64,000 bases of DNA from Paragordius varius (GCA_964247055.1 OZ176057.1:3720001-3784000); one strand, 5' to 3'. Positions 3,928 to 40,410 are shown, counted from the stretch's first letter. Notes: generated from the letters alone by a model not told the origin. Numbers and translations are program-made.

Positions 3928-5103
3928 AAGAGAATTTGTCCACAAATTAATTTAATGTTTATATGTATATATAAATAAATCAATAAATTTGCTATAATTT
4001 TCTGACAATTATATAATTAATGATAGATTATTTTATCAAAAATATTTTAAAAAATTTAACAACTTAATTACGAATTGATTTGTGTTTATTAAATTAAAAT
4101 TATCTCAAACACCGGTAACTGCATTGTTTTTGGAAAAATTTGTGATATAAAACTTCTCACTTCATGCAGCAAAAATATCTTATAAAATTTAAATAATATT
4201 TCATTTTGGAGTGTTTTTAAGAGGGGTAAAATTGTTTTTAAAAATAAAAAATTATTTTGATTAAACATATAAATGTCAGACATTTTTTAAGTAAACAAAA
4301 ACAATTTTTAGACCATTAGAATCACAGTTTAACATTTATAAAAAATTAAATCCATTTTTTAATTATAAGCTTTCATGTTTTAAAGGAATACCAAAAAAAA
4401 TTAATGAAAAATAAAACGATTTTTTATTCCATTTTTAAAAATATATTTTGAATAATGCACCTCTATTTAAATATGAATATGTATCTGTTTTATCAGACCT
4501 AGGATCCGAACATTTTCAAGGTATTATATTATCGAATTCCAATAAAGTTTTTGTAGCCCTGCAATAACGCGATTCAATTAATATTTTGAAGAAATTAAAA
4601 AATTTAAAAGTTATTATTAAAATTAGGTTTCTGTAACACCACAATAAACAATTTATCCTTAAAATGTAGTCTCTGAGTAAAAAGCTTGGTAAAATTCCCG
4701 AATTATGTCGTCATTCATTATAGTATCGAGTTCACTTAACAGTATGTCATTTACTTTGGGATAATATATATATATATATATATATAATTATTAAATACAA
4801 TGAAATCCAAAAATATTTTCTAAAAATCTGAGAACTAACATCAAAGCTTTTTTGCATAATTCCTGGATACGATAGTGTTTGTGATATATATATGTATTGC
4901 ATTGGCACATAGAATTTAAGTAAATATCGGATGAAAAATACTTCATGAAAATATTCGAATACAAATCTAAATGAAACTGTTCACGAATTCGGATTTATAC
5001 AATTGTACCGCAAAAACTCGCATAGGGCTAAACTAAAGATAACCTGCCCAACGCATATAATTTACTAACGAGCTTTATCGTTTTAGCGGATGTATGTATG
5101 ATG

Positions 5104-8236: not shown

Positions 8237-8293
<57 letters not shown>

Positions 8294-9433
8294 AATATAC
8301 CTTATCCTAAACGAGCGCCAAGTATAGTTAGTTTGAGGAGATGTTTGACCGACGCTTTCACAGTTATTTGATGATAAAGGTTCAGCCCTATTATAATATA
8401 CTGAGCCCGATTGCTTATTTGAGTTACGCATTTTATAACTTTGTTGCTTTTGTTGTTTACCCGAGAGTGTGCGAACGAAACTTCGATTACGGTGAAACCG
8501 TAGGAGTCCATTTGTTATGTAAATCGATAATACCAATATTCCAATGCCAGGAATTACGGATAAAAGTATTTCACGTATAATGTCATAGTAGTAGAGTTGT
8601 AGGGATTCATGCAATTTATATTTGTAATACACGGTTGTATAAGAACAAGTCGAGACACTCACATTGGGAAAGGATTTCGCTTTAACATTCGTTGGTTGAT
8701 TGAAAGAATATTGTTTGCAGGATCTGACTTCATACCAAAAATAACTGGAAAAACTTATGAGCAGAGCTGTACCCCAATACAAAAGTGGTAGGTGAATCCC
8801 ACGTTTTTGATATTCGGCATCACGATAACGTAAAGGATACTTCAATGATTGATAACGGTTTAGGAGAAGTAAGAGAAGAGAAAATGCCCCAGTTTTTGCA
8901 GAAGCGAGCATAAATATGAGTTGAAATCGAGATGTCCACGTTATCCAATGTCGATTTGGGCTAAAAGGACTAACTTGAAAGCTTATAATTTTATCAGCCA
9001 CATACAATCCATAAAACAAAGTGGTGATGAAACCAAACGCAATTATATACATCAAGTACATATTGTACTTTAGGTTAGTAGGCGAAGAAAACTTCAGTTT
9101 TACGGGTATCAAAATGTTTGATGTATTTATAGCACGCTGGAGTTTTGGAATTAATGGATTGCTCGTTATTGAGTCTGTTGTTTCCGAATTTTTTCCACGA
9201 TCCGTAAATTTAATATTTGATGTACCTGCCCGATTATTTCTATAATTTTTTTGACTGTATAGGAGGAAGATCCAGGCTATGTGTAAGCTAACACTCAAAA
9301 CGAATGTAAAGGTATATATTGTAAGTAAGGATATAGTCTTGTAATTGTATCTATGAACTATGTATCGCCTCAAATATTTGTGCTGTTCAAGTATACTCGA
9401 ACAATTGGGCAACATATCATCAATAGTTGCCAT
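5104..9433 (-). CDS. Divergent class A (rhodopsin-like) orphan GPCR, 2 exons, ~457 aa
   Basis: complement(join(5104..5344,8301..9433)) with a phase-2 GT-AG intron: ag|gtatat at 8300 and ccatag| at 5345. Exon 1 carries five hydrophobic segments, with TM3 ending LLLLNRYQSLKYP (DRY-like). Exon 2 supplies TM6 (LIYFVIYVSCQIP, CWxP-like) and TM7 plus FDKRFQN*. Confidence 0.8.
5939..6255. mobile_element. MITE family A copy in GPCR intron
   Basis: Tandem acaattcaaattcacc units at left, inverted units at right, terminal ctgtaaatggtata. Confidence 0.75.
8244..8289. repeat. (TA)n microsatellite
   Basis: About 23 TA units starting ~10 nt inside the GPCR intron; this explains the YIYIYI tail of the raw ORF. 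Confidence 0.95.
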
Positions 9434-35878: not shown

Positions 35879-36106
35879 TTATTTTTTTAAATCCTTCTCA
35901 TAACCACCAACTAAAGATCCCAAATTCATGAGCAAATTGCTTGAATCCAAATAAGCCTGATTTTTCGAGTTGGCCACCTAAATACAAATTCAAATATTTC
36001 AAATTTTTTAGCAAAAATAAATGTTTTAAACAATACAAAAATAGAAATATATTTCTATATTTTTCCGGTTAACAAATATAAAGCAAATAAAATATTCTGG
36101 ATATGA

Positions 36107-36140
<34 letters not shown>

Positions 36141-39100
36141 TTACCGTTCGAGCAATATTTTGAGCAGCAGTTATTTTTCGAAGTTTCAAGTAAGCCGGAT
36201 TCTTGGAAACAGCTTCTCCAATGTATAATCAAACATATAATTTTGAGTTAAGGTTTTTATTTTTATCATAGTTTTTTTCCCTGGTAAAGGAGTTATAAAA
36301 TTTCTTGTTAAAACAATTAAATTATATACAAAAAATAAGAATATAGAGATTATATAGCATAAACACCTAGAACCATATCAATGTGAATATTCTCAAAGAA
36401 ATATAGTTGTTAGTTTCTATTTATATATAGCTAAGCACTTTAACACACACAGCAAATATATTGATAGCACATTAAAAGATAGTAAAAAGTTAAAAAACAT
36501 TTAACTAAATGTACTATCAGGCAATATTTAATATAAAATTAGCAATGTAGACTTATTCATTTGTATTATGTAAAAAGAGTTGATTAAAAGTTTTAACTCA
36601 AGAAAAAATAAACCCATTTAAAACAATCGAACCATATTTTAAATCCCTTTACATCTTATAATTGTTAATTACTAGGTTAAGAGTTTCTAATATAAAAAAA
36701 ACATAAGTTAACATCCTAATCGTTTTAACAACCATATAAACAAATTTTTTTACCGGAAAATGTATGTAAAAAACCCTAAAAAGTTTTAAAACTTATATTA
36801 TATGTAAAAATATAAAATTTATGTCTTAGGTTCCCAAATTTTTTTGGCATAAATGTTAGATTTTTTTGATAAAAAAGGATATCAATTTCCCAGCCTCGGC
36901 CTCACCCTCAGCCTGCACAATTTTTTGCTGTTTCTCTTGAATGGCTCTTTCCACGACAAAAGCTGCACGTTGGGCTTCTTGTTGAGCAACCTATGTGTAG
37001 GATATGTAAATGGAATTGTTCATAAAGATAAAACGTAAAAATATATAAAGACAAATATTTTTTCTAAAAGACAACCATTTAGTTGATTTATTTCAATATA
37101 ACTCCTTGTTTCAAATGGCAAAGTGTGAAATAAAGATATATATTACTAACACAATCAATCCTATATTTACAATTAAAACTACGTAGCCTTTATAGGAAAA
37201 ATTAAGGTTTTAAAAGTATGGTTTGTTGTCTTTTATAAAAACATATCTGTCTTTTAAAAAATCTTCCTCCATATAATTTCATTTTTACTGTACCTGTAAA
37301 TTTATAAAATCGAACCAAAATAATTCGCTAAAACAAATCATAAACTATTAGTTATTATTGTTATTATGGATAAAACCAAACCTTAAAGCGCTCGAAACTA
37401 TGAAACAAAGCTATTTTTCGGTGGACAAAAACACCTGAATTATAGAATCAAAAGGCGAATCTTATATTCAATCCAATATTCATCAGTAAAAGATATACCT
37501 GTTTAGCTTCAACTGCGGCCGTATATTGTGGGCTAAAACTCAGCTCTGTTATACTAACATCATCGAGTACAATGTTAAAATCACGAGCCCGATCTTCAAG
37601 TGCTTTGCGAATGAGTAAACTTACTTGCTGTCTTTGCGTTATCAGTTGAGAGGCATTAAATTTGGCCACTACACTTTTAAGGGTCTATATATATATATAT
37701 ATATATTATTCAAATTCATCCTAAAATAAATTATGCGCTTTTTTAGATTAAACATTATCTATATTATATATATATATACTATTCAAATTCACCCTAAAAT
37801 AAATTTTGTGTTTTTTTAGATTAAACATTATCTATATTTTATATATATAAATAATAATGAAATTTAAATAATACCTAAAAAATAATAAACTATGTGCCAA
37901 AAAAGATATACATTGGTATATTATACAACCCAAAAACACATAATTTATTTTTAGTGTAAATATAAATTGTTCAGAAGGGGGGGTGGATTTGAATTGTAAA
38001 TGGCATATATGAAGTGTGGTTGAGTAATTAACTATACAATGCTACTTTTTCATATTTAATACTGCCCAAAAGCATATATTACAGTAAAAATACGGGTAAA
38101 TAGAAAGAAAAGAGACAAAAAATAAGATTTGTAATCAAAAATATTGATCTTTACTTATAATATCTAACAATCTTAAATGTTTACCTATTGTCTATATTTC
38201 TACTTTATATGAGTTGCTAGTTGTTTATAAAAAATATTTTGTTTTTTTTTCATATAAAGAAAGCCATTCTTGATTTGTTTTAATATAACATGAATAATAA
38301 CACTCTACGTGACATTTCTATTGCGCATATTGCAACGACAAGTTACATTTTTAAAAAAGGTTTTAAAAAATATGTAATCTAGTTATACTTCTTACTTTTG
38401 ATCTTATAACTTTAATTTTTACTGTATCCCGCCCCATACCCAACATAAAAAGTATTTGAATAGGCTCATATATATTTATATATAATAAACATCACTACAC
38501 CTCTTCAAAATGAATTTTTTTTCAAAATGCATATTACTTATAACCCTAAAAACTCATGTTGTCAACCATTCCATTTTTTTTCTGCCAATGTGTTTTAGTC
38601 ATAAAATTTGATCTATTGTTTTCGAGTTTAAAAATGCATAGTTTTTTCATTTTTTAAAATAAAAAACAGAGCAACGTATGAATTAACCTCATTAACGATT
38701 GAAGGTAAAACTCTTTCTTCATATTCCTGACCCAAAACTCTGTACATAGTGGGCAATCGCAATTGATCTGGACGAGTCAATACTCGTAAGGTTATATTGA
38801 CCATTTGTAAATCTAAAAAAAATGTGAAATATTATGGTATCAATAGCAAAGCCATACACCATTTAAATATTTGCAAATAATTATTAAATAATCAAAACGC
38901 AATCATACTTTGTAAATTGGATATAAAAAATGGAAAAAAATAAAAAAATAGAATTATTACTCGTAAGGAACAAAGTAATAGAGTTACAATCATAAAATTG
39001 TTCAATTTACATTATAAAATCGTTCTGTAGTTTCAAAAAAAATTATAATTTTATTTTCGGGTTTGTTTTAATGATTTAAAAGTTGAGATATCGGTTCACT

Positions 39101-40410
39101 TTTTTAGGGTAATATATATTATTTCGATGAGACAAAAATATGGGTAAATGAACCATTAAATTTGTTATATACTATATTTTAAATAAACTAGAAACTTTAT
39201 TTATTTATATAATAGCTAATGTAATAAAATCGTTTGCCTTATATGTTTTATTTTTAAAATGTAAATAATATATATTTAATAAAAATTAATTGGAATTCGT
39301 TTATTCAAAAACGAATCAACTAAAAATTTTAATACAAAATCCTGGTAAAAACTTAAAAGATATTTAAACTTTTTAAGCAAAGCCTTACCTTTACTTCCTG
39401 TAGGTGAGGAGATTTTCCTAGGTTTAGCTCTGATATCATAAATTATTGGATATTGAAACCATGGGATTCTAACAAAAAATAGGATAAGCTTTATGAATAT
39501 TAAACTAATATATGTAATTAGTATATTAATTACATATAAGACTTATTTCATATAATAAATCAAATTTTAGGATTAAGAACTATGAATTCGTATTTCCATA
39601 TATAATTGAGTAACAATTTACATCTCTATTGCTGTATTTTGCAAAAAATAAAAACGATAGGATCCTAGAGTTTTTAACATATTATTTCAATTTTTATGTT
39701 GCATCCATAAATCCATATCAAAAATTTATTAAGGTATAGTTGACGCCCATTGAAAAGCTTTGGTTTTAAACATTTTTATTATGAAAAGTAATGACAATAA
39801 ATATTATCATATACTGGTTTTTTTAAAATGAAATGGTTCCAGTTAGCAAACACCCTTAAATGTTAAAAAATATTAGTAATTTCAAAAAAAAATCAAAAGA
39901 CCTAAAATGAATTCCTTCGCTGTAAACTTCATTTTGCACTCCGGTTAAACGACTGAATATGATGGCACGGTGTCCAGCTTCCACTATTGGTATCAAAAGA
40001 TATGAGTAATATTACAGTAAAAATCATATGTTTAAACAAATTTGATTAATAAAGTCGTTTGCGGTTGCCAAATAAGAAATTTCAATAAAAATTGATCTCA
40101 AATTTTAAACAAACTAAAATAGCTATAAAAAAAACTCAAAAAATCAAATAGTTATAAAAATATAGTATTCTTTTGTTTCCATATAAATGTTAAATTTAAA
40201 AAGATTGAAGAAAAATTATAAACAACCTACACATAATTATCTCAAAATTTATAGAAATACGATATTTATTTAATAAATATAACCTTGATAAACTGAATGA
40301 AAAGCGGCATAACCCAAAGCAGCCGCACCAATCAAAAATTTTGAAGCTGGTCCAACGCCTTTAGGATTTGATGCAAATCGAGCAAATGTTTCTGTAATTT
40401 TACTTTGCAT
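35879..40410 (-). CDS. PHB2: Prohibitin-2, 8 exons, 294 aa
   Basis: complement(join(35879..35977,36145..36222,36883..36990,37499..37684,38688..38812,39389..39468,39902..39983,40284..40410)) = 885 nt with no internal stops. Contains [66 protein letters not shown] and [16 protein letters not shown], all characteristic of PHB2. Confidence 0.97.
36223..36882 (-). other. U12-type (minor spliceosome) AT-AC intron, PHB2 intron 6
   Basis: 5' site TTG|ATATCCTTTT (36882-36873), branch motif CCTTAAC (36253-36247), 3' end TAC|ATTGGA. Removal restores EAEAGKL|IGEAVSKNP in frame. Confidence 0.93.
37708..38008. mobile_element. Degenerate MITE family A copy with ~68-bp tandem duplication, PHB2 intron 4
   Basis: attcaaattca(t/c)cctaaaataaatt...acattatctata occurs twice; right end gaattgtaaatggcata. 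Confidence 0.6.

Follow-up and report, generated by a model that had tools for sequence, protein, structure and literature searches.

The gene for prohibitin-2 (PHB2) carries a U12-type AT-AC intron in both fly and human; in the fly gene, CG15081 or l(2)03709, it is intron 3 of 5 (Lin et al., 2010, PMC2831892 Table 2). PHB2 is an essential gene, and in U6atac-mutant flies its expression is limited by the U12 intron; failure to splice l(2)03709/PHB2 in these flies has been argued to be primary and is the leading candidate for the cause of the mutant phenotype (Pessa et al., 2010, PMC2952598). An earlier note on the DNA described here, made from the sequence alone, had named prohibitin genes among the reported hosts of minor introns, and these two papers document this for PHB2 in both animals.

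We analyzed a window of 64,000 nucleotides (G000:C8:3720001-3784000) from a 110.6-Mb assembly of 44 contigs. The window is strongly AT-rich (G+C 22-33%), is not human, and contains a PHB2 gene whose sixth coding-region intron shares its host gene, AT-AC subtype, and signal class with the intron of Drosophila l(2)03709 (CG15081, Phb2) and human PHB2. It differs in the ~25 nt that separate its branch site from the 3′ splice site and in having a host of a different phylum. We conclude with high confidence that intron 6 is a U12-type AT-AC intron, that it is the same ancestral intron as that of fly l(2)03709 and human PHB2, and that the organism has kept the minor spliceosome. As a conserved U12 intron of the textbook kind, found here in a new host lineage, it adds a member to a known class, and for this reason the novelty implied by the earlier note was overstated.

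The PHB2 gene and the splice signals of intron 6

The gene lies on the minus strand, running from 40410 to 35879, and is intact, with eight coding exons and seven coding-region introns. Its exons of 127, 82, 80, 125, 186, 108, 78, and 99 nt make up an in-frame coding sequence of 885 nt, or 294 codons and a stop. Exon 1 (40284-40410) starts with the ATG at 40410 and ends in phase 1 at the donor CAAG/GTTATA. Exon 2 (39902-39983), whose translation ends in GIHF-R, is followed by exon 3 (39389-39468) and by exon 4 (38688-38812), which encodes DLQMVNITL...SIVNE. Exon 5 (37499-37684; 62 amino acids) contains the SPFH/Band 7 domain (Pfam PF01145, 36.7 bits) and is separated by a 508-nt U2-type GT-AG intron (intron 5, 36991-37498, GTATAT...ACATAG) from exon 6 (36883-36990), the 36 amino acids of which (VAQQ...EAEAGKL) correspond to residues 202-237 of human PHB2. 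Then come the U12-type AT-AC intron 6 (36223-36882; 660 nt, phase 0) and exon 7 (36145-36222), which encodes 26 amino acids (IGEAVSKNP...ART) corresponding to human residues 238-263. Intron 7 (35978-36144), of 167 nt, is again of the U2-type GT-AG class (GTAATG...ATTTAG) and starts with a (TA)n run, and exon 8 (35879-35977) ends in DLKK and includes the stop codon. All of these features are on the minus strand. Microsatellites of (TA)n lie within a few bases of PHB2 splice sites at 36103-36139 in intron 7 and at ~37688-37705 in intron 4, and exon 5 has as its acceptor the TAG that closes a (TA)n run.

Protein searches were carried out with the exons taken one at a time. The closest PDB relative of exons 6 and 7 was human PHB2 (E = 2.5e-9 to 5e-9 and 4.5e-8), well before PHB1 (human prohibitin 1, E = 2.4e-5), and this nearer relationship, together with the Band 7 domain, identifies the gene as prohibitin-2. 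A word-based protein search with exon 5 recovered PHB2 fragments of other species at up to 87% identity; several of the matches are named 'prohibitin 2' by JGI, and many are exon-sized ORF calls on long contigs. Within the genome, exon 5 gave a 100% self-match and one further locus, on contig C6, with 54% identity, which is presumably PHB1. PHB2 is single-copy in this genome, and the gene therefore depends on the removal of intron 6. That the gene might be a decaying pseudogene, with splice signals that are unused relics, is a reading with no specific point in its favor, and we regard it as vanishingly improbable: the eight exons all keep an open reading frame and have canonical junctions, exon 5 reaches the 87% identity to PHB2 fragments of other species just given, and the genome contains no other PHB2 locus.

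Read on the minus strand, the 5′ junction of intron 6 (36883/36882) is ...GCTGGGAAATTG / ATATCCTTTTTTATC... and the 3′ junction (36223/36222) is ...AAAAACCTTAACTCAAAATTATATGTTTGATTATAC / ATTGGAGAAG..., such that the intron begins ATATCCTTTTTT and closes with the AT-AC partner at its far end, AT occupying 36882-36881 and AC 36224-36223. The donor ATATCCTTTT starts at 36882, right behind the last codon of exon 6, and has ATATCCTT at the exon-intron junction. Its core, the U12-type 5′ splice site ATATCCTTT (36874-36882), is by our reading of the sequences complementary to both the U11 5′ end AAAAAGGG and the U6atac sequence AAAAAGGAGAGA. The branch-point sequence ACCTTAAC (36247-36254) agrees with the consensus TCCTTAAC at 7 of 8 positions, keeps the CCTTAAC core (36247-36253) whole, and can be read as complementary to the GUAAGGA of the U12 candidate described below. 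It is followed by 24 nt, terminal AC included, with no earlier AC or AG in this stretch. These signals, read on the minus strand, bear out the description in the earlier note of an AT-AC intron at 36223-36882 with a U12 donor and a CCTTAAC branch site ~25 nt from a terminal AC.

The same note held that PHB2 is restored in frame by removing this intron, and the alignments agree. Since the matches of exons 6 and 7 to human PHB2 are contiguous (202-237, then 238-263), with no gap and no overlap, cutting out exactly 660 nt restores a gapless PHB2.

We asked how much of this could arise by chance. As a bare motif, ATATCCTTT is present in 3 copies in the window versus 1.95 expected, and 35 of 100 shuffles contained at least 3. 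Taken by itself, the donor motif is no more frequent than expected by chance; it is the position of the motif that carries the case for the intron. What goes beyond chance is that the donor stands exactly at the exon end, that CCTTAAC falls within the last 31 nt, and that the next AC restores both the frame and the conserved protein. From base composition, we estimate the joint chance of the donor and branch site at fixed places to be ~1e-8 to 1e-7.

Judging from these signals, intron 6 is probably removed by the minor spliceosome in vivo. In such a pathway, U11 would pair with ATATCCTTTT, and U12 would pair with ACCTTAAC, leaving the branch adenosine bulged. The U4atac/U6atac.U5 tri-snRNP would join next, with U6atac taking the place of U11 at the 5′ splice site. 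The first AC past the branch site would then serve as the 3′ splice site, joining ...AGKL to IGEA... in phase 0.

Introns at the same position and a cryptic GT-AG pair

To compare the intron position with that of PHB2 orthologs, we used five long contigs of other eukaryotes found through the exon 5 matches, on which exons 5-8 were placed by tblastn. At the phase-0 KL/IG position, an intron is present in four of the five loci and absent from the fifth; all four introns are of the U12 type, two belonging to the AT-AC and two to the GT-AG subtype. The two GT-AG introns (loci L016 and L017) read GTATCCTTT ... (T/A)CCTTAAC ... AG, and the two AT-AC introns (L019 and L020) read ATATCCTT ... TTCCTTGAC ... 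AC. The comparator introns thus share with intron 6 the KL/IG position and phase, the donor RTATCCTT, and a branch site of CCTTAAC or CCTTGAC. They differ from intron 6 in the shorter spacing of ~11-12 nt between branch site and 3′ splice site, and two of the four have GT-AG ends. Since the orthology statement in PMC2831892 is joined here by four comparators that share KL/IG, the position of intron 6 is probably identical to that of the fly and human U12 intron.

In the fifth locus (L018), the exons are contiguous at KL/IG. Here the U12 intron of a PHB2 ortholog has been lost precisely, at 8998/8999, with an in-frame fusion of the exons and with the neighboring introns kept.

Intron 6 is also surrounded by a cryptic GT-AG pair on the minus strand, with the donor AGG/GTGAGG 23 nt upstream of the AT and the acceptor TTGGAG/ 7 nt downstream of the AC (window 36883-36906 and 36216-36222). 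The major spliceosome could in principle use this pair, giving a PHB2 product that lacks 10 residues. The pair is in frame, its donor is by reading a good U2-type consensus, and introns are known to convert through cryptic U2 sites that become active close to U12 sites (PMC3584512). However, this splice would take out 30 nt of coding sequence whose residues are conserved in all five comparators as well as in human PHB2, the acceptor GAG has a disfavored G at -3 and no pyrimidine tract, and the perfect U12 signals, donor and branch site alike, would have to be a coincidence without explanation. We consider use of this pair very unlikely and regard it as an annotation trap more than a likely splice. 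The warning in the earlier note that naive annotation will mis-splice PHB2 is therefore plausible: a gene predictor restricted to GT-AG introns would mis-model this essential mitochondrial gene, most likely through the cryptic pair, at the cost of 10 conserved residues.

Minor spliceosome components and further U12-type introns

We searched the genome for the minor spliceosomal snRNAs. With Rfam models, U6atac scored 66.3 bits (RF00619, cut-off 33) and U11 scored 62.7 bits (RF00548, cut-off 39). At 248 nt, the U11 candidate (G000:C5:11395495-11395742) exceeds the 134-position Rfam model, its first two stem-loops carrying large insertions. Fly U11 is enlarged in a similar way.

A U4atac candidate scored 50.7 bits, slightly short of the 53-bit cut-off (RF00618, E = 2.3e-6). 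The predicted U4atac-U6atac duplex consists of 12+5 bp with an energy of -29.8 kcal/mol, while shuffled sequences gave -13.1 ± 3.2 with a minimum of -22.6. Within this duplex, the U6atac helix reads GAAAAGGACGG where the Rfam consensus reads GACAAGGAuGG, and U4atac differs in a complementary manner (CCGUCCUUUUC), such that the pairs are kept. Since these changes are compensatory and the two genes lie on different contigs, they argue that both U4atac and U6atac are functional.

A direct genome search with the U12 model RF00007, in which 42 of ~10,000 candidates were scored, gave no match. The conserved 5′ 25-mer of U12, allowing up to 3 mismatches, had one match in the genome and 0 in the control. 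Against RF00007 this match was called as U12 with 34 bits (E = 0.001 on 12.5 kb), which does not reach the 53-bit cut-off. The candidate is on contig C5, and its 5′ end is GUGCCUAAAUCUAAUGAGUAAGGAAAAUAA; its first 30 nt are near-identical to the consensus, GUAAGGA included, and are followed downstream by an Sm-like site, AAUUUUUCGG, and then by 3′ hairpins. The four snRNA candidates (C2:4857045-4857187, C4:4407422-4407525, C5:11395495-11395742, and C5:10606515-10606665) have no upstream promoter element in common that we could recognize. Thus, the Rfam check proposed by the earlier note succeeded for U11 and U6atac, which exceed their cut-offs, whereas the U4atac and U12 candidates fall under theirs. 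Standard Rfam gathering thresholds would call half of the minor snRNAs of this genome missing; in other lineages, the same pattern has been interpreted as loss.

At least one protein specific to the U11/U12 particle is encoded as well. A 157-aa ORF gave 82-83 bits against PF18036, with the human U11/U12 25K protein as its top PDB match (E = 7.7e-15, covering residues 12-130 of 132), which identifies it as an SNRNP25 ortholog. Its identity comes from the PDB search; a word search with SNRNP25 found no match. A genome search for PDCD7 (59K) also found no match, and this search was uninformative, giving no response anywhere.

For further U12-type introns, a genome-wide pattern for short introns with both U12 signals gave 5 matches versus 2 in the control, without clear enrichment. 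At least two further AT-AC U12-type introns whose removal restores the reading frame are nonetheless convincing, one in HSBP1 and one in an SR-type RRM gene, both on the minus strand of their contigs. The HSBP1 intron (G000:C9:2495830-2495909) is 80 nt long and reads ATATCCTTTTT...TTCCTTAAC, then 18 nt ending in AC; its flanks encode positions 7-27 and 30-49 of the Pfam HSBP1 model, with one residue and a split codon between them. The intron of the SR-type RRM gene (G000:C1:7023201-7023261), of 61 nt, has the same ATATCCTTTTT...TTCCTTAAC arrangement, then 8 nt ending in AC, and its removal restores ...GFAYVQ/YLDWRDAEDA.... Searches identified this gene as SR-type RRM only; we take it to resemble SRSF10, a known minor-intron host. 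The number of nucleotides after the branch motif is 8 in the SR-type gene, 18 in HSBP1, and 24 in PHB2.

Two other loci, at G000:C3:4913332-4913382 and C6:5152318-5152359 (both plus strand), have a U12 donor and TCCTTAAC and adjoin open frames. The fifth pattern match, on C4, lies in G+C-rich sequence and appears to be due to chance.

Taken together, U6atac, U11, a U4atac partner, a U12 candidate, SNRNP25, and the further U12-type introns support, at the level of sequence, the proposal of the earlier note that this organism would have retained its minor spliceosome. They also bear on whether intron 6 could have kept its AT-AC ends while passing to the major spliceosome, as a U2-type AT-AC intron. 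In U12-type introns, the distance from the branch site to the 3′ splice site has an optimum of 11-13 nt and is a characteristic, not a defining, signal (PMC3584512). The ~25 nt between the branch A of intron 6 and the 3′ junction is about twice this published optimum and the ~11-12 nt of the comparator introns, and is nearer to U2-type than to U12-type spacing; the divergence of the U12 and U4atac candidates points the same way. The HSBP1 intron of this genome is also widely spaced, however, with its 18 nt. Against a change of spliceosome, intron 6 keeps all the marks of the U12 class (ATATCCTTT and CCTTAAC), ATATCC donors are absent from U2-type AT-AC introns (PMC3584512), and the minor machinery appears to be present in the genome. 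We therefore consider such a change highly improbable and favor removal of intron 6 by the minor spliceosome.

Lineage context and other observations in the genome

The source of this genome is probably a horsehair worm (Nematomorpha). In a pan-eukaryotic survey, the nematode clade is described as "broadly minor-intron-poor", minor introns of Trichinella were analyzed, and Priapulus is rich in minor introns (Larue and Roy, 2023, PMC10639083); since this is so, retention in a hairworm is expected. The survey, which also covers the minor-intron-poor Diptera, does not include Nematomorpha in its main text, and in the library that we searched, no paper links the minor spliceosome or U12 with Nematomorpha or hairworms. 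A U12 intron in PHB2 of a probable hairworm is compatible with a minor spliceosome in the common ancestor of Nematoda and Nematomorpha.

The probable hairworm is a further animal in which the U12 intron of PHB2 is kept; this intron is one of the few retained even in the minor-intron-poor Diptera. One more phylum would be added to those that keep the minor spliceosome, which will not surprise specialists. A broader statement, which we advance tentatively and lean slightly against in its full form, is that this is the first record of a working minor spliceosome in Nematomorpha, a phylum that is sister to the largely U12-less nematodes, and that this spliceosome is divergent (a U11 of 248 nt, with U12 and U4atac below threshold) and possibly tolerates branch sites unusually far from the 3′ splice site.

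Several other features of the genome were noted. On the mitochondrial contig, the region G000:C44:5980-10320 contains perfect palindromes without spacers, of 236 nt (66-301) and 188 nt (4067-4254). The 188-nt palindrome lies inside an open frame, in the invertebrate mitochondrial code, that starts with MMMNLFSSFD, which by eye we take to be an ATP6-type N terminus. A tandem array of 72-nt hairpin units occupies 773-1472 of the same region, just upstream of COX1, which is found at 7.5-8.8 kb on the long mitochondrial contig. Palindromes in mitochondrial coding genes are a signature described for Nematomorpha (PMC6649704). Two insects were considered as sources before the hairworm: the louse Pediculus was rejected, since COX1 is on this long contig instead of a minichromosome, and among chironomid midges, for which a loss of minor introns has been claimed, a haemoglobin-rich chironomine is unlikely, as globin searches of the genome gave only four matches.

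In quick genome searches, to which we give low weight, neither a (TTAGG)6 array nor a telomerase RBD domain was found. An exact-sequence look-up of a 396-aa open frame of the window (8243-9433, minus strand) returned no record; the frame encodes an apparent multi-pass membrane protein and has a (TA)n run at its end.
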